Below are positions 34,219 to 64,000 of a stretch of 64,000 nucleotides of DNA, piece after piece. A program made the translations under genes and the position numbers. Positions within the stretch are counted from its first letter, which is position 1; each line of letters starts with the position of its first letter. Source of the stretch: Takakia lepidozioides (lineage: Eukaryota > Plantae > Bryophyta); contig CM060731.1 of NCBI GenBank assembly GCA_030704615.1, positions 39,928,001-39,992,000 of the forward strand. Direction: 5' to 3'. Under the pieces are notes generated by a model that saw nothing but the letters and a program-made list of their open reading frames with translations, did no database searches and had not been told where the DNA came from.

Positions 34219-35256
34219 TGATTTCTTAAATTCTTGTGGTGTCAATCTGGGAATTCAAATTCAAACAAACAAAATATTAGTGAATCCAGAAATGCAAAAT
34301 TTAACACGAGTCTCCGGTCTCAGTATCCGTATTAATAGCTATTAATTTTGGTCTCTTGTACCCTGCTGTCTCAGGTGTGCCGCTCAGTGAAGTGGATCTT
34401 AGGTAGCAAGAGTCAGGTACAAGAGTCAGGTCCTTTAGTCTCTTGTATACTGTTTCTTCCAACTCGCTTCCTAAAATCCACTTCACTGAGCGGCACACCT
34501 CATCTCGTCTCCAGACTCCGGAGTACCTAGGAACTTACTAACTCTCGGAGGCGATGTGTATCTCATGTGGGAGACTGAAGCCAAGGGAGGAGGGAACATC
34601 GTACAAGTGGAGTGACAAATATAGATCTTCACAGATCTATCTAAATACTTGCATCCCTTACGCAAGCATTGTCCAAGCCCATTTCCAACTGCCAGCTGTA
34701 CGACATTCCCTCTTCTTCCATGGGTGATTTCTCCGAGATTTCTATCTACTCTAACATCGACTTCACTGACAACCTTGTGGTTAGAGTTAGCTGGCTCATC
34801 CTGTCGTGACTAAAAAATTGAATTAATTCAGTAACATAGTTGGGGATCAATCATATCTCAGTTTTCTGTACTGCAATGCAGACCGTGCGGCTCTATAGAA
34901 AAAAAGATGATCCCTCCCCATCCCCTACTCCACTGCAGAGATGGAGTAGAAGACGATGATAAATTGATCGGTGTTGAAATGTGTAATAGTACAACTCCAC
35001 TGCCAGTGATGTAGTGGATAAGTGAAATTCCACTCCAGTTGCAGTGTGGAGCAGCAGATGAGCAGTGCGTTCTGCAATGCACTGTAGTACCTCCCTGTCT
35101 CGTCTCTTTATCTACTCACCACAGCGAGATCTGGATAGACTCACCTTTCCTTACTCAAAAGAGCCTATACACCTGTCACAATCTTGTGATATATTTGACT
35201 TAAGAATCGAATTTATCTCTCGATTATGATCGGATCTTCTTCAGATATGCAAAACA
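34219..35256 (-). mobile_element. Dispersed repeat, probable solo LTR (family B), copy 1
   Basis: About 0.9 kb of clear reverse-complement similarity to 51741-52625. Shared end TGTTTTGCATATCTGAAG. No TSD identified, and the left boundary is approximate. Confidence 0.65.
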
Positions 35257-37957
35257 AACGAAAATAAAACAAAAAACTATAAAAAGGGAGGTAGACGAAT
35301 CCACACAATTTCACATCCACCAAGGAAGCAGGATGTGAACCCCAAATCACATGGGTGGCATGCAGTTCACTATCCAATTGAGCTACAGCAATACCACAAA
35401 GGACAAGGGATCACCAAGATTTGAGCCCCAGATCACCGAATACGTTGAAATCACTATTGACCAGTTTTAATTTGTTCTTTTTTACTTTTCTTTTCTTTCA
35501 AAAGTGTGGTTGTGTGTGTCCCTCAATCTTTCAATACGAAGTTGATCTAAGATGCAGTGCAGAACGTGCCTCCCCACAGTCACATGCACGTGTACTGGCG
35601 GTACATGTATGCAGTGGAGAAAGTGTTCCTAACTGCTGATCGTACTAGAAGAGACAGAAAAGACTATGGCCGAAGGCATGCTCATCAATAAGACCCCTTC
35701 CCCGTACAGGCCCTGTCGGGGGTGGATCATATTATTTAACTTAATACTCTGATAGTGTCCGACTAAGACTGAAACTGTAAAATGAGAATCTATCTTGCCC
35801 ATGCTAAACTGCCCACTGAGTTTCGTCTCCTCCTGTGTAGAGGAAGAGAGTAGAGCAACAACTTGCCCTAACAGGATACGTCACATAGAGCGCACAATCT
35901 CCCATGGGTGGCCAAAATTGAGCCAGTAATCAGGCTGCTCATACAGAAATCCATCCTGTAAATATATTGTCTGGCTGAACATGCCATACTGATAGCGGAT
36001 ACCATACCTAGCTACAGCCAACCAGCACAATCTTTTGGAGTGCTTCCTGCAGTCAACAGAACTCTTTCTACAAGACTCTGGACTTACAAGTGTAACTATT
36101 AAGCATATTAACTTGGTCGACTGTCTAGGTTACCTGAGACTCTATCTGACCCACTTAATTATGTCCTTCAGGTCCCCATAGCTCGGCCCATATGCAGTCC
36201 GTGCCTTAACAGACATGTCTGATTTTTTATAGCTCCAAGCAATTGCCAGCAAGAAAGCATGAGTCGTGCAGTGACGAGAGATGCCTTGTCTTTCAGCATG
36301 AGCAGTTTAAGCCTTTTAACAAAATCTAGTAAAGACATGATATGATGGGCAAGTACGGTAAAGCTTACCCCCAAGCAGAGTAGTTCATAGTGGCCAGTGA
36401 ATCCAAGAAACATGCAGCCAAACGTCCTGTCAGAGAACCACAAGATTGAAGCTTCTAACAATGAACAACTCTAACTTTGTACAGATCTAAAGTCTACTTT
36501 GCAGGTAATGGCAGGTGCAAGAAACGGGATGATACCTCAGCAACTAACAGAAACACAAGAGCAAGGGCTCCTCTACTACTGCCATTACTCCAAAATCATC
36601 CAGACTCATTCAGGCTCCTCCACTGCTACATGACATAATCACTAGATAACCACACCTCTGGATCCTTTTCCTGAAAGAAGATATGCCTCAATACCGCCTC
36701 TCCTCCTTACTTATCCTACATAACTTTGTTCTTCCATAACTCCTAGGCATATGAGGTACTTAGCCTAAGCATAAAAGTAACTCCCATTCTTCCCACTAAC
36801 CCTCTGGCCATCTTGCTTGTAACCACCGCTTTCACATCATTCTCTTGACACAAATCGTTCCCAGTACTCAAGCTTTTGTCTTGCCACTTTACCGTCCGCC
36901 AACTCGCCACATCACTCCACCTTTTCCTCCTCATCAGACAGTGTGTAACCTACTTTGCACATTTTGGGGGGTCAATCCCGGCATCCTCAGAGTGGCCTGC
37001 ACCTGACCGACGTCAACCCACATCATTCACCTCCTTTGACTCCTCATAACCCTCACCCTCATCATCAGAATCTTGGTCGGAATCCTCGTTAGAGTCCATC
37101 CCGTCAGTTATAACTGGTATGTCAATACCAACTAACTCTCAACGCCTAATACGTCCCCAGGGGGCATCTTAGGCTCTAGACCAAATACCGGTAAGACCTT
37201 CTCCACTCCCTGCACCAGCAATCTCTCCTCCACTCCCTGCACCAGCAATCTCTCCTCCATTCCCTGGACCAACCATCCCTCATTTACTTGGCCCCAAGTT
37301 AAAATCCATCTTAGGCCTAGCCTTGTACTGTGTATCCAGCCAACAAAATCCCGAATAGGGATAGGTACGTTGTTATATTTAATGGAAAATCCAACAAGCG
37401 GAGAAGGCCTTGTGGGCACTCTCACATGTGCAAGGGAATGGAAAGATGCACTACTTGGTATATAGAATACCCTAATCCTCAATGGATACGCGAAATTCAG
37501 GTAAAAGGAACTTTTGAAGGCTGCAGGTGGAACAGTTTGAAGATCCTTTGATGCAGGATCCACTTCTCTCCCATGAACTTTCACCCAACGATGTTTCTTA
37601 ACTGGAAAAATCGTGCCCAAAAAAATGACACCAATACTTGTGCTTCGGTCAAACGTCACCAAGTAACAAGACTGCGGTTTCCCCACGGTATCTGCCAAAG
37701 GCCTGTGTCTTCGTAGACACGAAGTGGCACTTGAAGGGCAAGTGAATCTGCAAGTGGGACAGCATGTAACTTACAGGGAGAATCGTTAGAAACCTCCAAC
37801 GGGTAGGATGCATAGGTTTTGTAAAACTACAGCTTGGAAGGCCATTGTAGGTACCTAGAAACACAAGATTGCAAAGCCTTATGATGTAGAGAGAGAAGAC
37901 TCCGGCCAAGCGTAACTAAGAGCCACCTTATGGCTACTGTCCCCTTTTGGAGGCGGG

Positions 37958-40435: not shown

Positions 40436-40759
40436 CACTGCCCTTTAGGTTCAGCCGGTTAAAACGTTAATAAGGGTTAAGAGGGTCTAGTTCCCTGCCA
40501 TATGCAATGCTTTTTTAAATAGCTTAAAGTAGAAACAATCTTTTTTTGTGGAAACTTTTGGGCCAAGCGTGTTTCCGTTATGGTTTGTCTCGTGCGTTTA
40601 AGAGCCATGGTCTGCAAGCCTTCCACACTTCGTTATTTGCAACCACACCCCTGCTCATCGGCCAACTCTGCTTATTTTCGTGCGCAAGCTCCCTTTGAGG
40701 TCTCACAAGTTCGCATCTTCTTGATGGAGCTAAATTGCTTTGGTGCAGAAAATGCGGGT

Positions 40760-41090
40760 GAAGGTTCAGATTTCAAAAACATAACACAGCGCGAGGTGTT
40801 TCCGCTACCGGGTGTTTTTCCTATTGCCGACTTTATACACGGGTGGTTCGATCTGGGAGGCCACGAGAAGAAGGCGGTGGAAGTGGAGAAGAGCATGGAC
40901 GCCTCCCATTCTTCACTTATTGAGGAGCACCGAAAGAAGGAGGAGGTTAGAGAGCCTGACACTCCAACCGATTTTGTGGACGTCTTGTTATCCCTCCAAG
41001 GGGAGAATGGGGAGGAACACATTAGCGACCAAACAGTAAAGGCCTCGGTGCGAGATATGATGGCAGCAGGGAGTAATCACACCTCAGCTT
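40760..41090 (+). pseudogene. Cytochrome P450 (CYP71 clan, CYP703-like) internal fragment
   Basis: GVFPIADFI..WFDLGGHEKK..LIEEHR..DFVDVLLSLQGENGEEHISDQTVKASVRDMMAAGSNHTSA covers helices F-I. No N-terminus or heme-binding motif was seen nearby. Confidence 0.75.
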
Positions 41091-42614
41091 TACTCTGCAC
41101 ACACGACACTATCGTCAAAGAAGAGTTTTGTCACTATAACAGTATTATACTTGATAGATTGAGCTGATTATTTCTCTCAAGAACTTCTCTCTCCTAAGCC
41201 AGACCACCTATGTCATGAGGAGCCCTACTATATTAGGGTCTAACTAAAGATCACCTTTTCTCGGTGGGCATAGAAGCAGCTGAAGAGCACGAATGCAGAC
41301 GGAATAGCCTGCATCCTCCAGTCTGCTCTTTCACCTCGCGCGCACATCACATGTATTTGACCTAGAATAAAACATGGATCATTATATTCTGAGAGAGAAG
41401 AGATGAAGGAAGACAGAGATTCACCGATTGAAAGCTTTGCAGTAATCAAGTAGCGATCCTGTAGCTCTAGAATTAGCCAACAACAATCCTGCAGAGAATT
41501 AGCAGTGAGCTGCCGGCGGCCGCAGCATGAAGCTTCACGTATATCCATTGCGAAATCCTAGTCAGGACGATCTGCAACTTGAAAAATTGCAATGCACACA
41601 GTCTGTCATGTGCACAATGAATGGCTCCGTGAAACTAAATCACATAACCATAGCAGGAGCGCTGGAGGAAACGCACCCATCCTCCCATGATGAGGACCGA
41701 GGGAAGTGCCAAAACGCCAGTCCCAACCACCAAGTTGAAGATGTAGCTGCACCATTCCAAAAATTAAGAACAACAACAATGACCACGGTCAGCTTCCTTC
41801 GTCTGTACTTATATTTAGAATTGAAAGTAAGGTGCATTCACACTCACGGAAACTCTCTTCTCGGCACCTTGAACACAACACTCTTGTTTCTTTCACCACC
41901 TGTTTATTCCATACTCTCTTCTTGGGTATACCGTGAGAACTGCATTGCTTGGCGATATAGTCATCTCGAATTGGCTGCTTCAAAATTCAGCCTCGCAAAA
42001 TTGCATCTGACGATCTACAAGGAATAAGTCGAGCCCGTGCATCTACAGTGACTCACATGCGACCACAATTCTAAGCAATCGTACTGTAGGTCCCTGTTTA
42101 ATGTTCGGAAAAGATGCCATGAGCCCTGCTCTGCACCCTGCAATTCAAGTATGGTTCAAGTATGGTGGCCCAGATTCTTATCTCTTCTTCTTTAGGACGT
42201 AGCAATGTAGCAACAATCGATCATTCGAAAGACCTCTAGAATTTATTGCAGCCACCTCACTTGGAACACCTCTTAAAGAAACTAGACATTTGAATGGATT
42301 GACCAGTCTACTTACGCCAGACCTATACCCTTATCGGTACAGGCATGTACAGTCTGAAATCACATCAATACATACATGTATATGTACAAGTATATTCATG
42401 TTCGAATCCTCTTTCAAACATTCCCGGGCTCACCATCAGAAAATTGTGAAAGCAGTGTAGGCCTCAATTTCCACACGCATTGAGCACCATGTTGAGGGGA
42501 TAGGGCCTCACAGGCTTAGAGGGGAATCTCCAGATAGCTCCAATAGGGCGAAGACTGGTCACACCAAAAAACACAGATTGGTTGATCAATCTTCTTCATG
42601 CTTCACAACTTGTT

Positions 42615-44621
42615 TCACCAGTAATCTCCACACGAACAAACGCCATCTTGGAAGTGGTGAAAGCGGTTGGAATCTCTGACAACAATTTCTCGCCCAACGA
42701 TCTTCGAAATGAACTTGGTGGCAGTGTGGCAGTCTCCACACACCTTAAGATTCTTGATGACGTGTATAAGCATCCCGGGGGGTGTGCTGATGAGCCCGAA
42801 AGCTATAGCTAGCTTCTCACTGTGGTACCCAAGAGAAACTTCCTTTTGCTCCTCCTCCACATCATGCAATACAAAGCTTGTGTCAGGCATGTAACCAACT
42901 TCCTTCATGCACTCAGAGAGTCTCTTCAGCTCGACATGTATTTCCTCATTTTGTGGATGCAAGGTGTCTTCTACAGGGAATGTATGCACCTGGTTGTGAA
43001 CCTCAATGCAGCTGCGCCCTGGCTCCTTTTTGACACCTCTCTCCTCCATCAATCTTCTCACATTCGCTTTATCATCCCACAGGCCAGCGGCGGCATAGAT
43101 GTTTGATAGCATGACATAAGCTCCAGGGTGCTGAGGATCACACTCAAGAATGCCTTTGGCAGCACGTTCTGCTCGCTCTACATCACCATGAACTCTAGAG
43201 GCCCCGAGCAACGCCCCCCATACAGAAGCATCAGTTTTGACGGGCATTTTCTTGATGAAGTCCTCTGCCTCATCCAATCGCCCTGCACGGCCAAGAAGGT
43301 CCACCATGCAGCCAAAATGCTCCACTGTAGGTGTGAGGCCATAATCTCCGCTCATGGAATCAAAGTAGTGACACCCTTCATCCACTAAGCCTACATGGCT
43401 ACATGCGGAGAGAAGTAATATAAAGGTGATACCATTTGGCTTCAAGCCTTGTTGTTGCATTCGTTGAAATACTCGGAGGACCTCACTACCACCTCCATGC
43501 TGTGCATATCCGGCCATCATTGCATTCCATGCGACCAGATCTCGTTCAGTCATTTTGTCAAACACTTTACGTGCGTCTTTTATGCTCCCACATTTGGCAT
43601 ACATGTTAACAAGGGCAGTGTCCAAATTTAGATATGACACAATCGCAGCTTTCATGATCTCAGTGTGGACCCGCTTGCCTTTTTCGAGGGCTCCTAAGCT
43701 TGCACACGCATTGAGAACACAGATGAATGTGACCCTGTTGGGAGTAACCCCTTCCCGTTGCATTCGCACATATTTGGAGAGCCTGTCACCACCCCCATGC
43801 TGAGCATATCCCGCAATCAATGCATTCCATGAGACCACATCTCTTTTAGTCATGTTGTCGAACACTTGCTTTGCATCCTCCACACTCCCGCATTTGGCAT
43901 ACATGTCAACAAGGGTAGTCTCCAACTTGATGTAGGCCACAATTCCAGCCTTCATAACAGAAGCATGGACCTTTTTGCCCTTATCCAAGGCTCCCAGGCT
44001 GGCACATGCATTGAGGACCGAAATGAATGTGACCCTGTTGGGTGTTACTGCTGCCCTTTGCATTTGCTCATATATCTCAAGAGCCTCCCTGCCACACCCA
44101 TGCTGGGCATATCCTGTGATCATTGCACTCCACAAGACTACATCTTGTTTAGACATGTCATCAAACACTTGTCGTGCATCAGTCATGCTACCGCATTTAG
44201 CATACATGTCAACAAGGGCAGTCTCCAAATTAATGTGTAATGCAATTCCAGATTTGATGATGTCAGCATGAACCTTCTTGGCCTTTTCCAGGGTTCCTAG
44301 GGAGGCACACGCATTGCGAATGCAAATGAATGTGAACATGTCAGGAGTCACCCCTTCCTGTTGCATTTGCTCAAACATCTTGAAAGCCTCCTCAGCATGC
44401 CCCTGCTTGGCATATCCTGCCATCATTATAGTCCACGTAAAAAAATCTCGTTGAGCCATTTTGTCAAACACTTTGCCTGCCCCCACCACGTCCCCACACT
44501 TGGCATACATGTTGACAAGGGTGCTGAGGAGAAAGATATCTGGCTTGAATCCACTTTGGGTTATGTGGGCATGCACCTGCTTTCCTGCTGCTAGGCTTTT
44601 ACTTTTGATGCACTCCTGCAC
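42615..44621 (-). CDS. PLS-class PPR protein with E1-E2-DYW (PG-type) domains; organellar C-to-U RNA editing factor
   Basis: 14 PPR motifs (L-S-P x3, L-S, P2-L2-S2), E domains, PG box [11 protein letters not shown], deaminase HSEK...CGDC and terminal CSCGDYW. The frame is open up to 44660 but has no ATG before 44510, so the 5' end is uncertain. Confidence 0.9.
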
Positions 44622-44819
44622 TAGACTCTGATAAGTGTAGATTTTGTCTTCGATAACCGTTCATAGAGCTATTTGTAATGCACCTACATCCATTTTTAAA
44701 TAAACCTTCATGAGTTAGTACCTATTCAAAAAGTGTGTGGGATAGGTTAATAAATAACAAACTTTCTATTTTGTTTTCATCCAATTATTTTATTTTTCAT
44801 TCATTCTTTTTAGACTGTA

Positions 44820-45850
44820 CCTCATTTTTTTCTCTATAAGTATAGAAAACGAGGATCATTTTCTTCTCTTTCTTCCGCAAGTTGTTTGCATATAATAGAC
44901 GTGTCTCTCAGTTTTGCTCTTTTACCTTCGTTTCTATGTTTTTTTTTTGTTTATGTTGCTTGTTTATGTTTCTTTGTCCTTTCGGTTCTTTGGCAATGTT
45001 TTTTAGTTCTTTTCAGTAGTTTCATTTGTCTTTGTTCTTCACTTTTGGTTCTATGTTTGTGTTTCTTTCTAATTTCTATTCTTTGTCTTTCTGTGTTAGG
45101 TTAACCTTCTCTTCTTTTTTCTATTTCATTCTGTTTTTTTTTTTTTCTTGAAAACTCTATAAGTATGCAGAACGAGGATCATTTCCTTCACTTTCTTTTG
45201 CAAGCAAGCTTTCTGTATAGAATAGAATTGTCTCTCAGTTCTACTCCTTTGTCATCATTTGTGTTTCTTCTTTGCTTCTGTTGTTTGTTTATGTTTCTTT
45301 GTTCTTTCGGTTCTCTGGCAAAATAAAACTGTCTCTTAGTTCTTCTCAGGAGCCTTCATTTGTTTTTTCCTTTCATTTTCTGATCTTTGTTTATGTTTCT
45401 TCTTTGCTTTTGTTGTTTATTTATGTTGTTTTGTTCTTTCGGTTTTGTGGCAAAATGGACTGTCTCCTAGTTCTAGTTCTGAGTAGCCTTCATTTGTTTT
45501 TTTTCCTTCGCTTTCCGTTCTTTGTTTATGTTTCTTTTCGATCTATATTCTTTGTATTTCTGTGTAAATTGTACAACAAAATAGAACTTTCCATTCTTTC
45601 TTTCTCTTCTCTTTCGTTTTGTTTCTTTCCTCTTCGTTTGTCTTTCTTCTTTGCTTTTGTTGTTTGTTTATGTTTCTTTGTCCTTTCGGTTCTGTAGCAA
45701 AATAAAAATGTCTCCTAGTTCTTCTGATTAGCCTTCATTTGTTTTTTTCTTTCACTTTCTACCTTTGTATTTCTGTGTGAGTTGCTGAGCGGAGTAGAAC
45801 ATTCATTTCTTTCTTTCTCTTCGTTTTGTTTTGTTTTTTTTCTTCTAACA
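44820..45850. repeat. T-rich low-complexity duplicated blocks
   Basis: ctctataagtat..aacgaggatcattt occurs twice and gtttatg..ttctttcggtt..ggcaaaat four times. Strong T skew. Confidence 0.7.
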
Positions 45851-45994
45851 TATTTGACACACTATCAGATAACTACCAAAAACACTATCTTATATTTCCA
45901 AGAAATCATCAAAATTCATTACACTGTGATTATGCCACTTTGAGTGTTATATCATAATCTATAGTGTATATGATATTCAAACATGCTTTTAATC

Positions 45995-46690
45995 ACTCTA
46001 AAAATCCTTAGAGCGGCTCATAGCAGCTCTAAGGGATCCTTAGTGCGATTGCAAATAGCAATATAGTTTATTCTGTTTTCTTGCTCTAAGTAATGCTTGG
46101 ATCAAATGTGAATAGCCATTTAGATTTTTTATTATTTTCCTGCTGTAATAAATCCTTAGAGTGGCTCTTAGGGATCCTTAGAGCAAATACAAATAGCAAT
46201 TTAGCTTTTTCTTTTTCCCCGCTGTAGAAAATCCTAGAGCGGCTCTAAAGGATTCTTAGAATGAATGTAAATAGCAATTTATCTTTTTTTATTTTCTTAC
46301 TCTAAGTAATACTTAGATAGAAGGTAAATAACAAATTAGTTTTTTCTGTTTTTCCACTCTAAAAAACCCCTAGAGCGGCTCTAAAGGATTCTTAGAGCGA
46401 ATATAAATAGCAATTTAGCTTTTTCTATTTTCCCAATCTAACAAATCCTTACATTGGCTCTAAGGATATTAAGGGATCATTAGAATAATTGTAAAAAATA
46501 CGTTAAGGTTTATCTTCTTCGTCATGGTTGACCGATTTGTTTTCCCGCTCTATGAAATCCTTAGAGCAGCGTAGAATGCTATAAGGGATTCTTACAATGA
46601 ACGTAAATAACAATTTAGTTTTTTTTTTTTTTTCCAATTTAAGAGATCCGCTCTAAGGGATCATTAGAATAAATGTAAAAAATATGTTAG
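45995..46690. repeat. Irregular tandem array built on the inverted motif TTAGAGC-N-GCTCTAA
   Basis: About 6-7 degenerate units of aaatccttagagcggctctaagggatccttagag..aaatagcaattt. Confidence 0.75.
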
Positions 46691-47437
46691 GGTTTTTCTT
46701 CTTGGTCATGGTTGATTGTTGAGGCCGTATGGCACCCTTTGAGATTTAACTCTTCTTCCCCTTCAATAATTCAACTATTAACAATATAGTTGTTTGGCTA
46801 AAAGTAATGTGATTTTTTGGCTAAAATATATTAGGGTTTAGCCAGACCTTGTCGACGTGGCCTTCTGTCTTGTCAAGAAACAAAAACTTGGCACTAGCTG
46901 GCATCCTAAAGAATATCCTTGTGAGTGCCACAACGCTTTAGAATAGGGCCAAACAAACAGAAAAATAAAATAAAATAAAATAAAATAAGAATGACAAGTA
47001 AGAAGCAACAAAGCAACAAGCGACCGGCAATTATTAGGATGGGAGTTGCTTTCCAGCTGTCAAATTTTGGAGCTCCAACCTCAAAGTGTATCCTCGGCCT
47101 ATATACTTTAGGAATACACAATAAGCACACAATATGTACACTTGCCACAAAGACACGAATACATAACCGAGGTTTGGAGGCATTTTGCCTACGTGGCAGC
47201 GTGCAATTAGTCCTGGACAGGCCTGTCACCCGCTGTAGCCCAACACCGCTAGCCAATACGTCCAGAAACCTCGATTATGTCCTATAGACGGGGAGGCTTG
47301 TCCGGCTACACCCCATAGCCGGTCTCGGCTACCTAGTCCATAGAGAACTCGTGTTAAAATAGTCCAACAAGGCCGCATGTTCTGTCACATCAGGTGCTCT
47401 GGGAGGTTCCCCCATTGTTCGGTCTTATGGCCCTTTA

Positions 47438-50270: not shown

Positions 50271-51740
50271 TGAAATTTACTCGAGTTCATAAGGCTACGT
50301 TGAATCGCAGAGACAGTTCTTTCTACCGGGTACTTCCATTCTTGAGAAAACCCCTCACTGTTGATTTCTGCCAAAGGTACTACAGTAGTTTCAAAGGCTT
50401 TGACAATGTCAACCGTGTTGAAGTCACCCCTGCACCCTTAGTAGTCCTCACCGCTTATACTTGTGACAATTTTTCGGCTTGTACAGACGTTGAATTAGGG
50501 CCAACCAGAATCTCTTGTCATTACCACCATGGTGATTTCAGTTTATTTCACTGTTTAACTTGTTCCAATATAATTTCTTCTGACACCTTACGACATCTTT
50601 AATGAGAAACTGGTAGTACCTAGCCCACAATTCTTTGGTGACTTTCATAATGCACCACTCTTTATAGATGAGGTCTCTCAGCTATCTTGAGTTTGATCTT
50701 ATTGGTCCACCAATTAACAGCTCTACCGCAGACAAGTAACTTTTCAGCCACAGAGGAGACAAAACTCTCCCAAGAATCCCCGGCTCTTTCGACTTAATTT
50801 CTTGCATCGTTAGAGCGAGACTGAGATCTAGGAACGAATGGACAAAGTGAGGGAGAGAGGGAGAGCCTCACTAGCCTTGATGCTACGTTCCTTCTTTTCT
50901 TATTCAATCCCTGTTCACAATCCACTTTCAGCCAAGCCACTTTCTCATTCCAAATTGCATATTTACAGACCGTTTCATTACAGATCACCAATCCGTTTTG
51001 GCTTCCGTTCATAATCTACTGATCTGTCGACTTTTGTACTTGAACTGAATTTATTATGCTCTATGCAAAGTACTGGAATGCTACGTCCAGTCCGCCCAAC
51101 CACCACAGCGTGCATCACTATTCACCATCACAAGGCAGTGCATGTTGATCATCTTCCTTCTTTTTTTCTTTTTTCTTTTTTCTCCAAAGCCGAGAAGTAA
51201 GGTTTGTGGGAGGCTGCCGCAAACCTGAATATCGATTTGGGGAAGGGTTTGGAAACGGGTCGATAGTGGACGTAGCGGTTGGGGTGGCTTTTGGGAGAGA
51301 GGGAGGGCCCACCGGCCCCTACATTTGGTGATGTGGCGCCGGACATTATTCCTTGAGAGTCGCAGCCTTGGGTAGAGTGGAAGGACCCACCATGAGCCAT
51401 GCTTCCTGTTCTCCGCGGGTACTTCTGCCATGGATGGAGTGGGAGAGGTCAGGAGTAGTGATAACCCTTTTTCCACTGCTAGGGTGGTACTGAAAGGAGG
51501 GAGAGGTTCCCCCACCAGGATTTCCCCTTGCTGTGCCATGGCTAGGGCCGAGGTGCTTAGTGTAAATTGGGATAGTTCAGAACTTCCGCAGGCGCTGTTC
51601 GGCGTGCCACGGATGAACACGCCCGAACTCCAGACCGCCAGTAACAATCCACACACGTCCCGAGAGGCGGGTTTTAACTTTGAACCCGGAACAGACAGGG
51701 TCACACAGTACTGTGCTGAGCTACCAGCCGACGAGCAATT

Positions 51741-52625
51741 TGTTTTGCATATCTGAAGGAGATGGGAACATAATAGAGAGGTAAAGTCGATTCTTAAGTC
51801 AAATATATCACAAGATTGTAACAGGTGTATACGACTCTTTTGAGATACCACGAGATGCTTTAATAAGAAAAGCTGAGTCTATTCAGATCTCGTTGTGGTG
51901 AGTACATAAAGAGACGAGACAGGGAGGTATTACAGTGCATTGCAGAACGCACTGCTCATCTTCTGCTACACACTGCAACTGGAGTGGAATTTGACTTATC
52001 CACTACATCACTGGCAGTGGAGTTGTACTATTATACATTTCAGCACTAATCAATGTTTTACTCCATCTCTGCAGTGGAGTAGGGATTGAGAGGGATCTTT
52101 TGTTTTTCTATCTAGAGCCACATGGTCTGCATTGCAGTACAGAAAACTAAGATATGATTGATCGATCCCCAAATATGTTAGTGAATTAATTCAAATTTCT
52201 AGTCACGACAGGATTAGATTAGACGATGCTAGCTCTTGGAGATGGATTAACCACAAGATTGTCCAGAGTAAAGCCGATGTTGGAGTAGATATAAATATCG
52301 GAGAAATAACCTGTGGATGAGGAGTAGATCGTACAACTAGTAGTTGCAAATGGACTGGGACAATGCTGGCAAGGGATGCAAGGATTTAGATAGATCTGAG
52401 AAGATCTTTGATTACCACTCCACTCGTATGATGTTCTCCTTTTCCTTGGCTTGTTTCTCTCACATGAGATACACATCGCCTCCAAAAGTTAGCAAGTTCC
52501 GAATCTGGAGTCTAGACCCAAGATGAGGCGTGCGCTCAGTGAAGTGGATTTTCATCACTAAGTAACAAATGGAAAGAAACAGTACACAAGGGAGATATAA
52601 AGGACCCAAAATTTAGCTATTAATG
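51741..52625 (+). mobile_element. Dispersed repeat, probable solo LTR (family B), copy 2
   Basis: Inverted homolog of 34330-35256. Starts TGTTTTGCATATCTG and may extend to about 52760. Confidence 0.65.
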
Positions 52626-52906: not shown

Positions 52907-54092
52907 CAGTGTTGGGAGGATACCCTTTTTCTGCCATTATACCCTGAGGGTAAAACCCAATAAGGGTATATGGATATACCCTACCTTGGAAATTCCAAAA
53001 TACCCTTACCCTACCCTTGTGAGGGGTAATTATTTTTGTTATACCCTTAATGGATTATACCTTGGGGTTTGAAAAAACGAAGGATACCTTTACCCTGAGG
53101 GTAAATCTGTTCAATGGCCGGGTAATAGGGAAGGGTATAATAATTTGATTACTAGGGGTTTAGGTTTAGGTGTGGTATTTGCTAGTAGAGAGGGCAAACA
53201 CTAGCATTTTTATTTATTTATTTTTCCCCCTTCGTTGGTCTTCCTCTTCGCAGCTTGTGCTCCAAGACCGATCTTTGCCACTCTCTCCTTGGAAAAAGCG
53301 TGTGCTAGTGGCGGCGACCGCTTTCTCTTTCTTCGGTACCCACCATTCTCTTATCTATGGTGCAAAGCGACCTCATTATGATCAAATGTGTTGTTTTGTT
53401 ATTATATTTTAGGGCCATTAGAGGAGCATAAATGAGGGCTAAAATTTTGCTATTCGCAAGCCACATAAAAAATAAACAAAAATATAAATAAAAGGCATAT
53501 CCCGTTAAATTCTATATAACGGGGATGTTATATAGTTGAAATGCTTCGTCTTGGTTAGGCCCTCTGGCAATTCCCTCCCCCCACCGAGGTTTTGGTTCTT
53601 AGTTAACTCCTGCTTTCCCCCCCAACCCCCTACCAGTGTTGGGTGTTCCCAATGTGATATGCCTTTACGGTCCCTTAGGAGGTTATTTTTTCCTCCTCTC
53701 TGTTCTCATTTTGCCACTCCAATAAAGTTTTTGTAGGGCCTATGTCCCTTTTATCAAAAAAAAAGAAGAAGCTTTATTCTAAGTATTTAATAAAATTCAC
53801 AAATAAAATTTAAAAAATTAATTTACCCTTTATAATTACCCTAGGATATCCTGAGGATATAAAAATGGTACTATTATCGTGCAATTACCCTTACCCTCAT
53901 GGTATATGTGGCACCCAATACCCTTACCCTGAGGGTAAATGTTTACCAAAAATTTATTTATATCCTTACCCGGAGGGTAAATGTGTTCAAAAAAAAGATT
54001 ATACCCTTACCCTGAGGATAAGTTTGACCCCCAAAATCATGTAATACCCTTACCCTGAGGGTAGAAAAAATCAATATACCCTCCCAACACTG
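52907..54092. mobile_element. Intact non-autonomous hAT element, 1186 bp
   Basis: TIRs cagtgttgggagg / cctcccaacactg, perfect 8-bp TSD CTACATAC, subterminal tacccttaccctgagggta repeats at both ends. Confidence 0.92.
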
Positions 54093-54648
54093 CTACATAC
54101 CCAAACACCACACAAACATTCAATATTCAGTTCATCTCCATGCAACTTTAGTCACCCTCAGTAAACTTTTCCTTCAGTCCACTCATAAGGCTTCCCTGAC
54201 AACTCCATTTGCTAAAAGCCTAATAGAATCACCATGATAGCTTTCAAGGAGATCAAATAGCAATGGATATAGTATCTTAGCAGAACAATGATCCATGATG
54301 AGGGTCAGTGATATAATTTGGAATTTTCCACTTGGCCTGAAACAAAAAAAGTAATTGTGTTCATCATGTGACAACTAATTCAGCATGTGGCAAACTACCA
54401 CGTCAGTATATGTGCTGCTGCCTTTCAGTTCAAAAAATGTTTGAGAACAACATTCTCAACCGCAAAATTTTCTTAAACTACTGACCTTTACATTGGCAGT
54501 CAATGATTTACCTGGATTCATCAACACAATAGTTGGTAAAAACTGCGATCTAGTTGACAGAACCAATGTACCAGACGCATAAGAGAGACAAACTTCCCCA
54601 GCGCGAAGTCAAACTGTCCTTTCATTGGGTGTTGCCAGTGTACCCATA

Positions 54649-57600
54649 CACTATAACAGATGAGCGTTTTTATGACTGCACATATGACTATTTTTTCAGT
54701 CCTATATGCGTTCATGACTACATCACTTTGTAGTGAAAAAAACCCTGTCATAACGATTGCGTTTTGCAAGTCATAGCCGTGACTACGTGCGTGACACCTG
54801 GAGTCATGCATAAGAGAGTGATGTAGTCACAACTCTATGACTTACATATGACTAACTATATGACTACATTGTCTGTTGAGCGTTGCCTACATGGAGAGGC
54901 TTTAGAGGAACACGTGCACCACTGCGCAAGCGACACGTCACGACACCTGTTGCACTTCAGATATGACATGTGGCACTTAGACAGAATATATGACTACTTA
55001 TCTTTACACGTGTTGAAAATATGGATTAAAGAATGTCGTGTCATACAATGCTACGTGTTCTAGCTCGAGCAGGGTTTATGCCACGTGTCATTAAGAATGT
55101 ATCTGAAAATAATTTAATAGTTTATATTTATAATTTTAATTTTATATTTTATTTTTGAAAACAGGAGGATAGCAGCTTGGAAGATTTTATTAAATGGTAT
55201 TATTGTTTAATTTAATAATAATATAAAATAAAAATAGATTAAATGATTTAAATTCTTCATTACATGATGAAATTTCGATATAAAAACAGAATGGACCCCT
55301 CCTGCATACTGGCAACCACAAGGTTCAAAAATCCATGCTTGAAAAGGCCCAGTAAGCAAAAAATAAGCAAGCCCACACATGGGCTGAATTATTGTAGTAC
55401 TAGTTTGTTCTGGTGCTACTAGAATCAAGGACCATGTTAAACAGTGCAATACTTACAGCCAATTCTGATAAGAGGGAAAACAGGGTGAAATGTGTTGAAG
55501 AAGGTGCCTTGATTAACAGTGCCTGATTTGATCAATTGTGCCGCTGCTGCTGTGGCTTCCAGTTGACCATCTACCCATGCAGGTTTCTTGTACATATCCT
55601 TTCACAGGGAATCATAGGTAATCTGGAGCTTGAAATCCGGCCCTCTTGGATGAATCTGGACCCACACTCTATCCCTACTCCTTCAGCTATCCATGCCCCT
55701 GCACAAATCATGCATACATCCCCGCCTTGCTGCCAGCAGCTGACAATGACAGCCTAGAATTACTTGAGCAAACACCCCAACCCTACGTATCACACAAGTT
55801 CTTATGTTGACTTGCGTCTGCTTCCAACAGGCATTCACTTTTTGCCTCGATTGTTCCACCATTGACTGAGGTTGGAAACATATTCATCCCAGAGCTTCGC
55901 CTCGAGTATCTATTATCTATTTTCGATACTTTCCAGTCAACCACATTGGCAGTAACATATCATGCATACATCCTTGCCGTGCTGCTAGCAGCCGACAAAT
56001 AACAGCCTAGATTTGTTTTAGGAAACACCCAACTCACATTATCACCTCACACCAGTTCCACAAACGTGATGTGGTTGGGCTTCACCCCTTCGCACATCAT
56101 TTGCTCATGGGTCTCCAAAGCCTCCATCCCGTACTCTTGCTGTGCATATCCTGCAATCATCGCACTCCACGACACCACATCTTGTTCAGCCATAGTGTTG
56201 AACACTCATGTTGCATCCTCGATGCACCCACATTTTGCATACATGTCCACCAGGATATTGTTCAAAATGACATTTGGTACAATTCTAGCCCTGACGATGT
56301 CGCCATGGACCTCTTTGCCCTTTTCCAGAGCTACCAGGGTTGTGTTCAGAATGACTTTTGGTACAATTCCAGCTTTGATGATGTCACCATGCACCTCTTT
56401 GCCTTTTTCCAGGGCTGTCAGGCTTGCACAAGCATTGCAAGTGCACACAAACGTGATGTGGTCGGGCTTCACCCCTTCGCACATCATTTGCTCATACGTC
56501 TCCAAAGCCTCCATCCCGCGCCCTTGCTGTGCATTCCTTGCGAGCATAGCACTCCACGACACCACATTTCGTTCAGCCATATTGTTGAACACTCCATTTG
56601 CATCCTCGATGCTCCCACATTTGGCATACATGTCCACCAGGGCAGTGTTCAGGAACACATCTGGTACGATTCCAGCTCTGACGATGTCGCCATGCACCTC
56701 TTTGCCCTTTTCCAGGGCTACCAGGCTTGCACACGCATTGCAAACGCACACAAATGTGATGTGGTCGGGCTTCATCCCTTCACACATCATTTGCTTATAC
56801 GTTTCCAAAAGCTTCTCCTCACCTCTGTTATATGTTTTTGGATACTTCCCTGCTGTCATACTGGCAGTAACTTGCCAAAGTCACTCCAAGCCGCCACAGA
56901 TTTACCCAACGACCTAACTTACAGAATTCAATATGCATCTTGCGGCCGAGTCTGATGAGAGGGCAACACAAGCTGAAATAGGTTGAAGAAGAAGGTGCCC
57001 TCACCACATTGTCCTTGACCTTGTGTCCTGACCCATGGAGGATTTGACCGACCATCAACCCAAAAGGACGTCTTGTGTGTGCTGCTTGTGTCTGTAGTCA
57101 AGTAATGTCGGATTGGTCTGTGAGATCGAACCACTACGGCGTAGCTGAGTAGGCAGAGATTGAAACACGCTTGCTAAGACCAAGCTACTCTCCCAAGAAC
57201 GGCGAGCTTCTCCTCGTCTCTCCTCCTCCTCTTCTCCTTCCTGCATCATTTGCTCAACAACTCCATCCCACGCCCCTGCATATCCTGCTATCATCGCGTT
57301 CCATCCCTCGGCTACATGGTATAGCGTAGGAGACAAGAAAAACACAAAGTCCCAGCCTTTCTCTCTGTTCACGATTACCCTAATGGGCAACCTTATTAGC
57401 ATTATATGTACCTTCAAAATGACACGTGTAGTGATGTTGTAGTATAAATAGAGATGTGAAACCATCTTCAGTCATGGAGTCATAAGATTCCATGAAACGT
57501 CATCCACGTGTAGTCAAACATATCACACTAGTCATATAAACCATCCCTGTCATCATGGTCAACAATGTTTGACCAATGCTCCCTAACTTTCCGGAGTCAT

Positions 57601-57734
57601 GTAGTAATATCCATTACTACAGAGTCATAAAACTATGACTGTAACGTATTTCAGCGCTCTGTAGTCGTCTACCTAGTGCAGTTTTTATGACTCCGCCAAA
57701 GCCGTAGTCCTAAAAATGCTCATATCTTGTAGTG
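54649..57734. mobile_element. Non-autonomous Pack-CACTA element carrying PPR gene fragments, 3086 bp
   Basis: TIRs cactataacagatgagcgtttttatgactgc / gtagtcctaaaaatgctcatatcttgtagtg, 3-bp TSD ATA, atgact/agtcat subterminal repeats. The empty site ccc-ATA-aaagcc is at 58135-58146. Confidence 0.92.
56050..56815 (-). pseudogene. Captured PLS-PPR repeat fragment (no E/DYW domain)
   Basis: P-L-S motifs ([45 protein letters not shown]), an in-frame internal deletion and a premature stop at 56206. A further P-motif scrap WNAMIAGY lies at about 57240-57303. Confidence 0.9.
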
Positions 57735-58679
57735 ATAAAAGCCATGACTGAGCAATAGCTTCTGCCATTACCCATACAGTGGTGATTGGTCCTAACCATA
57801 CTCATATACAATATAGATAGTGTGGATGTTAGAGACATAGTGAGAGACACAGCTGCCTAGGGAAGTCCACTGTAAATTTCTATGAATACAAAACGACAAA
57901 GTAAACAGCAGTCAATGGTTTGCCATACGTGGATGGAACCAAAATAGATAAACCATGGCTGGAGCGAGCTTCACATTGGCAATCAATGATTTACCTGGAT
58001 TCATCAACACAATAGTTGGTAAAAACTGTGATCTAGTTGACAGAACCAATGTACCAATCGACGCATAAGAGAGACAGTAATAAACTTCCTAGTGCGAAGT
58101 CAGACTGTCCTTTCATTGGGTGTTGCCAGTGTATCCCATAAAAGCCATGACTGAGCAATAGCTTCTGCCATTACCCATACAATGGTAATTGATCCTAACC
58201 ATACTCATATACAATACTGTAGATACTGTGGATGTTAGAGACACTTATTGGCAGCTGCCTGGGGAAGTTCAGTGTAAATTTCTAGCTAGAAGACAAAACG
58301 ACAAAGTAAACAGCAGTCAATGGTTTGCCATATGTGGATGGAACCAAAATAGATAAACCATGGCTGGAGCATTTCACGAAGGTGGCAGAGTTACAGATCT
58401 TGTCTTTCAAGTTGGGAACTTTTTAACCCCATGGAATAAGTTTGAAGGGACCATCAAGAGAAACTGCTAATTGTGGGCAGGTGTGGGGCTCCTGTTGAGC
58501 ACCAAATCAACTTCCACGAGAGGATCCTGCAGTTGAGGGCTTAAGGGTTAATTGCCCGACTTCCAGCTTGACAGGTATGCTGACATGCCATAAGTGAATG
58601 CTCATGTCATGTACTGGACAGTTCTCATGATCATCGAACAATACATCATGTTCCAAACGGATTGGAGCACCCCTTTCTC

Positions 58680-61600
58680 TGTTGGAGTTACAGTTCGTCA
58701 TTAGTTACTAATTACTTACTGTCGAGAGTAATCTCTGATGTGACTAGATAGAATGATTAGCTGAACAGGCTACAGCTGTTCTGCATGAACCGTGGGTGAC
58801 TGCTGACATGCCGCTTGGCAATTGGTTTTTGAACTGCTGATTCAAAGTGGGCCGCCGCCACTATTTTGAGTATATAGGGTGCAGGCTGTCCAAAGTACGA
58901 TGATGGATGCAGAGGTACACATAGAGTGTAGTATCAAGGGTTAAGCATCACGGTGTCTTCACAATGATCAATAAAAGTACTCTAGCTTATTCCAACTAAG
59001 TCTTGTGGTTGTCACTGCTCTGATATAGTAGCGTTATTTTCCTAAAGGTTACGGGCCCACGTTTGCTGAAGCTGTAGGAATTAGTGATGACGTCCAAGGC
59101 ATAGAGATCAAGGAGTTGAGTAATATTGAGAGGTTTGATGGAGATAACTTCCAACTTTGGAAGTTCAAGATGCAGGTGGTTTTCAGATCGAAGAAACTGC
59201 TTAGTCTAGTCAAGGGAGTGGAGACTAGAGCGATTACCGAGAATGAGGAGGAATGGGATGAGAGACAATGCAGCTACTATGCTCATATGTTCAGCAGTAA
59301 ACAGGAAATACTTACAACAGTTGATCAATTGTAAATCTGTTGCGCTCATGTGGAACAAGTTGAAGTTAGTACATGAGCAGAACGCAAGTGAGAACATCCA
59401 CATCCTTCAACAATTTAAGTTCTTTGAGTACAGAATGAGAGAGAACGATGATATTTCGACTCATATTAGTACCATTGAGTGACCTAGGAGAGGCCACTTC
59501 AGAGAGAGCTGTGATTACAAAGATTGTGTGTGGTCTGCCGCCTAGTTACAGGCATCTTTTATCAGCGTGGGATAGTGTACTTCCTGAGAATAGAACATTG
59601 GAGAATCTAACATCGAGGCTCCTGAAGAAAGAGTCATTGAATGAAGAATGAGGGAATGCCGATGAGCAAGGAGATAGAGCTTTCTTCACGAGAAAAGGAA
59701 GTAGACTGCAAGAGAGACTGTTTGAGGAGCAGAAAAAGCAGTGCAATGAGAGAATCAATGAGCTTAAGAAGAGAACCAGATGTAATAATTGTGGAGAGAA
59801 AGGCCACTGGGAGAGAGAATGTCCAAAGAAGAAGAGGGAGATCGATCCTGGAAGTAGTAGTGAGGTCAATCAAACTTCAGCCGATGTAAGCACAGAAGAA
59901 GGAAGAGCCTACATAGCAGTATCCAAGGCTTTTGTTGTCATCAATGATAGAGATGACAGTTTAAATATCAAAGGAGAGTTTATTTTTGCACTCGCCTATG
60001 ATGAAGGTGACAATATCTGGTATGCCGACGGTGGAGCAACTGAGCACATGACAGATAAGTTGAGATGGTTCAAGAATCTCAAGAGTGTTGAAGAAGTCGA
60101 TGGCCTGTGGCTGTTGCTGATGATCGACAAATTTGGGGAGTTAGAGGAGTTGGTGACATTGATGTCAAGTGCTACGTACACGGCCAATGGGAGTATGTGA
60201 CTTTGATGGGAGTATTATATGTACCTAGATTGTGCAGAAACTTGTTCTCAACGGGTCAGGCTGCAGACAAAGGTCTAGTGACGGTCTCAGGGAAGATAGA
60301 GTGTCAACTGATAGACAAAGACGGTACAGGCAAGGTGGTCATGACTAGTAAGAGAGATGGAATGTTATATAAACTTCTGATAGAAGTGGTCACACCAACT
60401 AGTCAGTCAAATTGTGGGAAGAGAGGATAACCAACGCCAGAGCCTATATTGGCGAACTCCAGCCGAGAAAGAGTCTCAAACTCTGGCACCATAGATTTGG
60501 TCACATGAATTGTAACATGCTGATCAAGATGTCTAAGATAGGCATGGTAGAAGGACTGAATATCCGTGAAGGAGAGACGGAGGTGAGCTTTTGTGAAGGC
60601 TGTGTACGTGGCAAAAATCACAGATAGGTTTTCCCAATGAGAGTAGAGCGAAGGCTACAGCTTCGGGAAAACTATTGCACACAGACGTGTGTGGCCCTAT
60701 GCATGTAGTATCACAGGGATGAACCAGATATTTTTTCTTTTTAAGGACGACTTCTCTAATTATAGAGTCATATATTGTGTGAGCAAGAAGTCAGATGTCT
60801 TTGACTGTGTAAGAGACATGGTAAAGAAGACGAGCAGAGAGACTGGTCAGAGAGTTAAGAGATTAAGGAGTGACACATGAGGGGAATACGTTAGTGAGAA
60901 GATGAGGAAATATCTTGATGATCAAGATATTTTTCATGAGATGAGTGCTCCCTATTCACCGGAGCAGAATGGTTTCTCAGAAAGAGAGAATAGAACCATA
61001 GTTGAGTCTGCAAGGAGTATGTTGCATGCAAGTGGAATGGATCTGAAATTTTGGGCTGAAGCCATGCATACAGCCGTGTATGTGTTGAATAGGTCAGGAA
61101 ACCGAACACTAAGTGGTGTTACGCCAGTGGAAGCGTGGAAGCGTGGAAGGGAATCAAGCCATCAGTGGCACATTTAAGAGTTTTTGGATACGAAACTTTT
61201 GTGTTCATTCCAAAGAGCTTAAGGCACAAACTCGAGTCTAAGAGTAAGAAATGTCTGTTTCTTGGTTACTGTAGCGAGAGCAAAGCCTACAGAATGTGGG
61301 AACCTGTGTCAAGAAAGGTTGTCATTAGTAGAGATGTAGTCTTCAATGAAGACATAATCTCATAACGTTTTGGTGGAGAGAATGCAGCAATAGAGACTGA
61401 GGGAAAGTTTTCAGAAAATGAATGCATGGATCCTTCAGTTGGTTCCACAATCACATTAATTGAGTTACCAGGAGCAAGAGAACACGACCAAGTGTCACTG
61501 AGGAGGTCCAGTTACAAGATATTACAGAACCAAATGAAGGAGTGGGAGAAATGAATGAAGAATTATGAGATACAAGAGTTTCAGGTGGTGCTGCCTATTG

Positions 61601-62745
61601 AGGAAGAAGCCTCAGTACATCAGAATCCACATGTACCTGTGAATCATCACAGTGGAACGTCAAGAAGAGGACGAAATGTGCAGCCACCACAAAGGTATGA
61701 AGACTGGTGTTATCAGATAAGCAGTGTTGTTTCAGAGTTGTGTGCTTATGCTGCACAAACTGAACTGACGGATGAGCCACAAAGTCTAGATGAGGCTTTG
61801 AAGTCAGAATGTAGCATCCATTGGCTAGCTGCAATGGGAGACGAGTATAACTCTTTTGATGAAGAATTGGACATGGGATTTGGTTGATTTGCCGCTAGGA
61901 AAGAAACCTATTCATTGTAAGTGGGTGTTTAAGTTGAAAGTCAATCTTGATGGAAGTGTGGAGCGGTATAAGGCTAGGCTAGTGGCCAAAGGATTTTCTC
62001 AGCAGAGAGGCATTGACTTTGGAGTGACGTTTTCTACGGTCGTCAAGTTTGATTCTATCATGACTGTATTGGCCATAGTAGCGAGTGAAGATCTCGAGGT
62101 TTTACAGTTTGATATAAAGACAACGTTCCTAAATAGAGATCTAGAAGAAGAGATCTATATGATGCAGCCACCATGCTTTGAGGAGGAGGGCAATGAAACT
62201 AAGGTTTGCAGGCTACTGAAAAGCCTTTATGGCTTAAGGCAGGCATCAAGAATGTGGAACAAGAGATTCAATGAGTTTCTAGTCAAATACAAGTTGGTTC
62301 CGAGTCTTGCTGATCCATGTGTATATCTCAGTGCCACGTCTCCAAGGTTGATTGTGATGTCCAATATTTGTTGATGACAGACTGGTTTGTGGAAAACAAG
62401 TTGCAGCAATGGACGAAATGGTACAAGAGATGAATGAGGTCTTTGAGGCCACAACTGGACCATGAGAAGTGTATGTTGGTCTACATATTACACGAAATAG
62501 AGATGAGAGGCTCTTATACGTGGATCATGCTCAGTATGTCAGAAGAATGATAAAAAAAATTGGCTTTGAAGATGCTAATCCAATTGCTACTCCAGCGGAT
62601 CTGAACGTACATCTTTACAGTGAAGGAGATTTCAATACTAGTCTCCACGATGAGCCAGCAATTGTCAATTTCCCTTACACAGAGATTGTAGGGAGTTTAA
62701 TGTTTGCGGCAATTGGCTCTAGACCAGACATCTCACATGTAGTGA
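58680..62745 (+). mobile_element. Degenerate Ty1/copia retrotransposon, 3'-truncated
   Basis: 5' LTR about 58680-59046, PBS ggttacgggccca, gag (FDGDNFQLWKF, zinc knuckle CNNCGEKGHWEREC), protease WYADGGATEHM, integrase (LWHHRFGH, PEQNGFSERENR), RT (YKARLVAKGFSQ, LYGLRQA, FVDD, RPDI). Many frameshifts and stops. Confidence 0.93.
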
Positions 62746-62869
62746 CGGTTTGCAACTACCTCACAGGGTAGAGATGGTATCCTACTCCATCACATACACG
62801 TGTATATATGTACATACATATAGATGTATACATATATTAAAATGTGGTGCAGGTATTCATATTACCAAG

Positions 62870-63420
62870 CGTCGGGCCTGTCCAGCCAACCCTGCTCTTC
62901 CAACCCTCGATGGGTTGGTAACATTGGATCGTGCTCTCTTCATGTTCTCACTCTCTTTCTTGCCCTTGGGGGACTCCCAGTACTTCACCAATGCATCCCA
63001 ATGGCAGGACTCTACACTCAGAGGGCATGGACCTCCAACCTTTCACACCATCTTTAACTTTTGGCAGTGTACTTTTATAATCCTCCCACATGCTTTCTGG
63101 AACTTGTCAACGCTCATAAGTTTAGGATAGTACTCAAAATCCTCGTCTATGGATTCCTTAACCTTGGCCATGTCACTGGGTTCTTGCTTGTCTGCTAGCA
63201 AAATGCTAGGATCAAGATATCTGATGCAGAGTCTCCGCAAGGATCTCTGCCAGTAATCCTTCCCCTCACACCCCTTTAGAGTTTAATTGTACCTTGTGCG
63301 GCTTCAGCCCAACAGATTTGCGGGCTTTTGCATCAGTTTCATGTTCATTTGCGGCCAGCCTTTTTTGCCTTTTTTTGTTTGCAGCCTGCGACACAACATC
63401 CCCTTGTTGTGTGGAATCTT
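62870..63420 (-). pseudogene. CACTA/En-Spm TnpA (Ptta)-like protein remnant
   Basis: Reverse strand HWDALVKYWESPKGKKESENMKRARSNVTNPSRVGRAG resembles the Transposase_24 motif. Stops and frameshifts are present. Confidence 0.55.
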
Positions 63421-64000
63421 GATCATCACCAGCAGGGGGGGTGAATGGAGGAGTAACACCATTAAAAGGGGGCCCTACCCACTGCCCACCAGTGGCGTTG
63501 CATGGAGGGCCCAAGTTTGGGCACCTCTTTGTACCCAAGCTCCTTGGGGTCCTCCATTGGATCCACTTGGAATCCATGACCACGTGTTCATCATTTGTGG
63601 AGGGGCCATGGGCTCCTGCCAGGTAGGTGGTACTTTACTGATGACATAATGACATAAGCTAGGACAAAACAGATATCATGATGTTTCATGATATAGTTTT
63701 TGTTCTAAAATAGTTTATCAGTTTTCTTGCTTACTTTTTTTTCGAGTAAGAACTTTATAGTACCTAGCAAGGTGTATCAGGACCAGGTTTAGGCCATGGA
63801 ATAATATCTTAAGGTACCATGACAGGCTGGTTGTAGGACCATATCAGCTAATGTTTTAGAATCCATTTTCTGCATATGTCATTTCCTCAAACCCACTGCT
63901 AGCCTGAAGGTAATCATAGCAGTGCAAACATACAAGCAAGCACTACTCGCAAGAACATGGCTATCTGAGTCACTGTAAGTAGATGCATTTCATGAGCCAT

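Follow-up and report, generated by a model that had tools for sequence, protein, structure and literature searches.

How do pieces of pentatricopeptide repeat (PPR) genes come to lie between the ends of a DNA transposon, and do they serve the host there? Few plant gene families are as large as that of the PPR editing factors. The question is raised by a 3086-bp element at positions 54649-57734 of a 64-kb stretch of the moss Takakia lepidozioides (GenBank assembly GCA_030704615.1, contig CM060731.1); the whole stretch is called the window below and supplies all position numbers. A preliminary description had called the element a Pack-CACTA transposon with a cargo of P-L-S (PLS) PPR repeats, and had proposed that it might shuffle editing-factor recognition modules around the genome or give rise to PPR-silencing small RNAs. 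The Pack-CACTA identity stands: the element is transposase-less, its interior derives from host genes, it has CACTA ends and a 3-bp target-site duplication (TSD), and its empty site is preserved. Very probably, it is a non-autonomous Pack-CACTA (En/Spm) element that transposed into its present place together with broken pieces of PLS-PPR and PDF-PPR genes and has no host function. Its structural traits (ends, TSD, empty site, subterminal repeats, PPR/PDF homology and broken cargo) are directly supported, and nothing in the sequence speaks for either of the two functional proposals.

Element ends, target site and empty site

The ends of the element are those of the CACTA superfamily. Each begins with CACTA when read inwards, and the 29-bp terminal inverted repeats (TIRs) are identical at 24 of 29 positions. 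A degenerate 29-mer drawn from both ends finds only two sites in the 64 kb at up to three mismatches, and both are the element ends (0 expected from 100 shuffles). No further copy of the TIR pattern, or of the YATGACT cluster described below, lies elsewhere in the window, and a metagenome scan for the TIR pattern found none. The trinucleotide ATA stands directly outside both ends (54646-54648 and 57735-57737), a TSD of the 3-bp length that CACTA elements make.

The surroundings record the insertion. The element interrupts the first unit of a ~400-bp tandem duplication, in the order X, element, Y, X', Y' along the window. Including gaps, X and X' are 90% identical and Y and Y' 89%; in ungapped blocks, identity reaches 91-98% (Table 1). 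In the second unit X' passes directly into Y' at CCCATAAAAGCC (58135-58146), which holds a single ATA. Filled site and empty site are thus a textbook pair for insertion. The empty site and the matching TSDs indicate that the whole 3086-bp unit came by transposition, duplicating 3 bp. The insertion is younger than the tandem duplication, because otherwise both units or neither would hold the element. The preliminary description had given a length of about 3.1 kb, TIRs of about 30 bp, an ATA TSD and an intact second target within a 400-bp tandem duplication, and all of this is confirmed.

A broken array of PPR motifs

The interior is a patchwork of ~2.3 kb in which all cargo pieces lie in one orientation, on the minus strand. 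Its PPR array spans 822 bp and alternates P, L and S motifs, in triplets of 35, 35 and 31 aa at 303-bp spacing. The array begins within a P motif and ends a few residues into an L motif, and in-frame stops stand at 56203-56205 and 56047-56049. One joint is irregular, with a truncated S motif leading straight into part of an L motif. The irregular piece is 28 aa long (TRF period 84) and is 83-86% identical to its neighbour, as diverged as the other copies are among themselves; to judge from this divergence, it may mark the place of an in-frame loss of 219 bp, not a recent duplication of 84 bp. Farther to the right lies an isolated P-motif scrap, which carries a 15-bp deletion relative to the P motifs of the array.

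Judged by its sequence, the cargo is unable to encode an editing factor: its ~2.6 triplets are broken by two in-frame stops, a start in context is lacking, and nothing of an E/DYW region is left. Nor does the cargo contain an intact reading frame that opens with a start codon and a targeting peptide, since the PDF segments described below are likewise stopped or frameshifted. A tblastn search of the element with the E-DYW part of the intact PPR gene of the window (42615-44621, see below) returned chance matches only (E>=6). Boundaries of its own, which the preliminary description had regarded as a sign of separate insertion, are lacking from the PPR piece: the sequence contains neither a poly-A nor a TSD for it.

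The history of the triplets can be read in part from their divergence. Among themselves, the cargo triplets are 87-89% identical at the DNA level, with a dN/dS of 0.30-0.40 between them. This ratio suggests that much of the divergence probably arose within a working donor gene, not after capture. Triplets of the 42615-44621 gene are 69-77% identical among themselves, and their identity to the cargo is ~70%. Taken by itself, the difference between 87-89% and 69-77% would suggest that a single PLS triplet was recently amplified inside the element after capture; the dN/dS values fit divergence in a working donor better, and amplification is kept as a candidate reading.

PDF-motif segments and GTAAGT sites

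Two further segments, near 56920 and 55455, had been noticed earlier as duplicated and donor-like, and this description is borne out. Between 56907-56991 and 55426-55503 they are 72% identical, and each carries GTAAGT on the minus strand (56922-56917 and 55456-55451), a few codons after GTFF(F)N. Beyond GTAAGT the likeness continues for 16 nt in the first segment (to 56907) and for 26 nt in the second (to 55426).

Four public PPR proteins (P0006, P0033, P0070 and P0083), found by a word search with a 217-aa open reading frame (ORF) of the array (56206-56859, minus strand), reveal what these segments are. All four have an N-terminal module, WWDHRSEK..YPDFKHK..ALWLDGKLNPPWVE, with the first PPR motif directly after it. 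When their N-termini were used as tblastn queries against the six frames of the window, every match with E<=1e-3, and the best match of each query, fell within the element; PDF segments and PPR array were searched as separate pieces. In the right-hand segment (PDF-I), SFWVDGRSNPPWVRTQ at 57068-57021 matches with E 5.7e-5, and 57165-57058 matches weakly (E 0.69) in a shifted frame. In the left-hand segment (PDF-II), 55760-55500 reads RGPDFKLQITYDSL and KDMYKKPAWVDGQLEA with a stop between them, then GTF, and all four queries match it with E 4e-4 to 1e-3. A better-kept first half of the motif lies nearby (Table 1).

By this likeness, the segments near 56920 and 55455 are decayed N-terminal PDF-motif parts of PDF-PPR genes, and the identity of the GTAAGT-ended segments as PDF-motif cargo is new here. 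In all, two to three such decayed copies are present; the segment heads certain PPR proteins in seed-free plants. Together, the PPR array and the PDF segments matching the N-termini of four PPR proteins give the element the host-gene-derived interior of the Pack type. A ~50-aa P-D-F motif is described for the organellar OSB proteins (PMC6963530); through the name-giving P-D-F signature, the PDF module is putatively likened to this OSB-type motif. A literature search for PDF motif and pentatricopeptide found no paper describing a PDF-PPR fusion, and an Atlas look-up of the module gave no usable match. Peptide deformylase was also tried for the DMYKKPAWVDG/AAAAQ segment and rejected: neither a sequence search of PDB nor Pfam with a threshold of E<=10 gave a match, and the segment matches the PDF-motif heads of PPR proteins instead.

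The GTAAGT of both segments would be a retained 5' splice donor. The GTAAGT-ended segments, and a cargo without poly-A or TSD of its own, argue for capture from genomic DNA rather than cDNA; the cargo was thus probably taken from unspliced DNA of one or more PDF-PPR genes.

Subterminal repeats and the rest of the interior

CACTA elements carry short subterminal repeats, and these are present here. The hexamers ATGACT/AGTCAT occur 41 times in the window, and 16 of the 41 lie within ~350 bp of the element ends, in less than 2% of the window. As expected for this superfamily, the orientation of YATGACT is mirrored between the two ends (Table 1). These repeats are presumed to be transposase-binding sites. 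A short inverted match (55082-55101 / 57409-57428) marks the inner edge of the left subterminal region, and beyond the TIRs no long similarity joins the two ends.

The absence of a transposase, already reported in the preliminary description, is upheld: the 14 translated non-PPR pieces that were scanned gave no Pfam match, and for 10 of them the threshold was as loose as E<=10; the scanned pieces thus hold no transposase domain. The AT-rich spacer next to the left subterminal region contains an inverted repeat (55133-55148 / 55220-55235) and a 13-nt tandem repeat. The intron-like stretch beyond it has no Pfam match and no match within the window. A ~91-bp segment is present twice, each copy upstream of a PDF first half. 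For the spacer, the intron-like stretch and the segment pair, the searches run gave no match. As to the PPR content, the earlier reading of about 0.8 kb of P-L-S repeats and of a second PPR scrap agrees with the Pfam matches to the array and with the P-motif piece at 57303-57236.

Table 1. Features of the element and of the tandem duplication that surrounds it, in order of position (a dot marks features without strand)
Feature	Position	Strand	Basis
Part X of duplication unit 1 (left flank), with the left TSD ATA as its last 3 bp	54483-54648	.	90% identical incl. gaps to 57966-58140
Left TIR, starts CACTA	54649-54677	+	24/29 match with right end
Left subterminal region, 9 YATGACT (7 forward, 2 reverse)	54678-55101	.	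Motif density and orientation
AT-rich spacer, 16% GC, small palindromes	55102-55280	.	Composition
Intron-like stretch just downstream of second GTAAGT	55281-55450	-	First 26 nt (55450-55426) resemble the stretch after the first GTAAGT
PDF-II, decayed N-terminal PDF-PPR segment (RGPDFK, KPAWVDGQLEA, GTFFN), two stops, GTAAGT end	55451-55760	-	tblastn
Better-kept first half of PDF motif, KLWDEYVSNLSQWWNNRGKK	55838-55897	-	tblastn, P0070 residues 24-43: 55% identity, E 4.4e-5
~91-bp segment, second copy at 55703-55793	55955-56045	-	79% identical, 252 bp apart
P-L-S PPR array, ~2.6 triplets of 101 aa	56047-56868	-	Pfam PPR_2, E 1.8e-19 and 1.1e-9
First GTAAGT (56922-56917) and short intron-like stretch between PDF-I and PPR array	56869-56922	-	Sequence
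PDF-I, decayed PDF-motif segment (LLDYRHK / SFWVDGRSNPPWVRTQ / GTFFFN), one frameshift	56923-57165	-	BLASTP vs P0083, E 7e-7
Isolated P-motif scrap, WNAMIAGYAGAWDGVVEQMMQE	57236-57303	-	65-70% identical to 56087-56169 and 56474-56556
Right subterminal region, 7 YATGACT (5 reverse, 2 forward)	57409-57705	.	Motif density and orientation
Right TIR, reverse complement starts CACTA	57706-57734	-	24/29 match with left end
Part Y of duplication unit 1 (right flank), with the right TSD ATA at 57735-57737	57735-57965	.	89% identical incl. gaps to 58138-58370
Second duplication unit (X'Y'), holding the empty target CCCATAAAAGCC (58135-58146)	57966-58370	.	Sequence match

Origin of the element and competing explanations

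The favoured course of events has four steps. A non-autonomous CACTA element would pick up pieces of one or more PDF-PPR genes; a cognate transposase acting in trans would recognise the CACTA ends and the YATGACT repeats and mobilise the element; the finished unit would be cut out and pasted into the ATA of unit 1 of the pre-existing ~400-bp duplication, with duplication of the ATA; and the element would decay after arrival, or would arrive already broken. The cargo would have been aboard at the time of insertion, since the exact empty site and the matching TSDs argue for the arrival of a finished unit. Of its own equipment the element retains just the parts that a transposase acting in trans requires, namely the 29-bp ends and the mirrored YATGACT arrays. 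Such an element would rely on a cognate autonomous CACTA element elsewhere in the genome, and it would now be inert, cargo-bearing DNA without host function.

Several points weigh against this account. The donor gene was not found, and the only other PPR gene of the window is ~70% identical. A single copy of the element was seen, so that a multi-copy family and the cognate autonomous element are unproven. Present-day mobility appears doubtful, given TIRs that mismatch at 5 of 29 positions. The reading of GTAAGT as a splice donor draws on its position and on the likeness of the two segments, and it is to be taken as provisional. Finally, no clean 35-aa P motif results where PDF-I meets the array, and a breakpoint may lie there.

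Alternatively, the element might have been empty, or filled with other sequence, when it inserted; the PPR/PDF interior would then have come in situ from PDF-PPR genes, by gap repair or gene conversion, and the element would never have moved PPR sequence. One route proposed for Pack-type capture is template switching during the repair of double-strand gaps, and repeated rounds of repair could yield a patchwork like this one, whose internal repeats are 72-89% identical. However, matching TSDs and an exact empty site are the state expected after normal transposition of a finished unit, and in the neighbouring-insertion capture model a fresh hybrid has unlike TSDs (PMC6379663). The internal repeats are moreover 11-28% diverged, so the patchwork is old. 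Gain of the interior in place is accordingly considered unlikely.

Transposition with the cargo aboard remains the favoured account, and two further proposals would add a use for that cargo. One holds that the host keeps or uses the element to make small RNAs which silence PLS-PPR genes in trans. The intact PPR-E-DYW gene, 10 kb away, shares an exact 25-nt match with the cargo, so that small RNAs from it could pair with many family members, but the same would hold for any PPR pseudogene, and small interfering RNAs may be produced from any transposon and yet have no function. The PPR copies of the element are all direct repeats; no inverted copy, hairpin or Rfam family was found in it. A role of this kind is very unlikely. 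The other proposal, that the 217-aa ORF is a working short PLS protein and the element the carrier of a new gene, is very unlikely: the frame starts within a P motif and without a targeting peptide, joins a truncated S motif to a partial L motif, and stops within an S motif while homology continues past the stop. It is the longest PPR-frame ORF of the element, it starts with ATG and it scores well against PPR models; the word search with it, however, found no protein above ~50% identity. A dN/dS below 1 between the triplet copies would also speak for it, but divergence in the donor gene before capture explains the signal equally well.

The donor search and the neighbouring PPR-DYW gene

The window contains an intact PLS-E-DYW open frame of 668 aa on the minus strand (42615-44621; Pfam DYW_deaminase E 5e-43, E_motif E 5e-22). 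There is no ATG at its head, where it starts within an L-type motif, and its N-terminus is probably encoded in an upstream exon. No PDF-like match was found upstream of it. The gene was considered both as donor and as TIR-flanked cargo in its own right, and was rejected: identity is ~70%, and neither matching termini nor a motif cluster lies nearby. The 25-nt exact match joins cargo 56609-56633 to 43582-43606 of the gene, in the conserved region of the S motif (DMYAKCGS). Directly upstream of the gene, 44800-46700 is a strongly strand-skewed, low-GC stretch (AT skew -0.36) whose minus-strand frames yield repetitive K/E/R-rich pieces.

The word search with the 217-aa ORF was limited to proteins of 119-380 aa. 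Its best proteins reach at most ~50% identity (40-50%) and come from Sphagnum, Diphasiastrum and metagenomes.

Other features of the window

The element is set in transposon-rich DNA, and other repeats lie upstream. About 400 bp to the left of the duplication, five tandem copies of a ~42-nt unit (ATACCCTTACCCTGAGGGTAAATG...) with a small palindrome occupy 53885-54086. A pair of 870-bp inverted repeats (51739-52606 / 34429-35258, 80% identical) represents another dispersed repeat family. To the right, a frameshifted Ty1/copia retrotransposon on the plus strand (~59100-64000) has gag-like and integrase-like pieces and an RVT_2 match (61856-62374, E 2.6e-49). A cytochrome P450 fragment on the plus strand (40580-41167; 195-aa ORF, Pfam p450 E 1.8e-9) probably represents a single exon, whether of a gene or of a pseudogene.

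Comparison with known gene-capturing elements

The dSpm/I elements of maize are non-autonomous derivatives of En/Spm (CACTA), and Tgm of soybean and Tpn1 of morning glory are carriers of gene fragments. For such gene-fragment carriers, Zabala and Vodkin (2007) is cited in PMC13317346. The Takakia element has in common with dSpm/I, Tgm and Tpn1 the CACTA ends, the 3-bp TSD, subterminal repeats in both orientations and captured exon-intron pieces. Its subterminal repeat, YATGACT, is family-specific, and the likeness drawn here is one of build.

Pack-CACTA elements are already well known in angiosperms, and the element described here is a further case of this known gene-capturing kind. What defines them in Arabidopsis is an interior derived from the host, between conserved CACTA termini, together with a 3-bp TSD (PMC6379663). 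Like those of Arabidopsis thaliana (Catoni et al. 2019, PMC6379663), maize and rice (Gisby and Catoni 2022, PMC8903248), the Takakia element combines CACTA termini and a 3-bp TSD with the lack of a transposase, and its interior consists of host-gene fragments, which in those species often come from several loci. It differs in its host, a seed-free land plant, and in its cargo of PLS-PPR and PDF-motif segments. The conserved terminus is 26 bp long in Arabidopsis Pack-CACTA and 29 bp here, and mobility is deduced here from the empty paralogous site, not seen in real time. Neither of these two papers nor a 2026 review mentions PPR cargo or bryophytes, and a full-text literature search found no paper linking CACTA elements to PPR capture.

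Meaning for the PPR family of Takakia

Retroposition is the route to which the growth of the PPR family is generally ascribed (O'Toole et al. 2008, as cited in PMC3814199; PMC13386178). It and the process described here both yield dispersed extra PPR copies. The copy in the element, in contrast, has TIRs and a 3-bp TSD, no poly-A and an apparent intron start; it was moved at the DNA level and is a broken fragment only. A survey published in 2026 puts the number of PPR genes in Takakia lepidozioides at 2,016 (PMC13386178). The same study ascribes the expansion of PPR genes in early land plants mainly to retroposition, and reports 'limited retroposition features' for the dispersed duplicates of Takakia (PMC13386178).

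An insertion with TSD and empty site that carries PPR/PDF sequence and an apparent intron start indicates that a DNA-level copy-and-move route exists for the PPR family. Taken alone, the element shows the movement of fragments, not the making of genes. With its termini, subterminal repeat and cargo map defined, it is a clean reference copy for a genome-wide census. A wider claim would be that CACTA transposons in this moss repeatedly capture the 5' parts of PDF-PPR-DYW genes (PDF exons and first PLS triplets) from genomic DNA, scatter them and thereby add working dispersed copies or new motif combinations to the ~2,000-gene family; it is given a low chance of being right. If true, a gene-making route by DNA transposons, alongside retroposition, would fit the 'limited retroposition features' of Takakia (PMC13386178).

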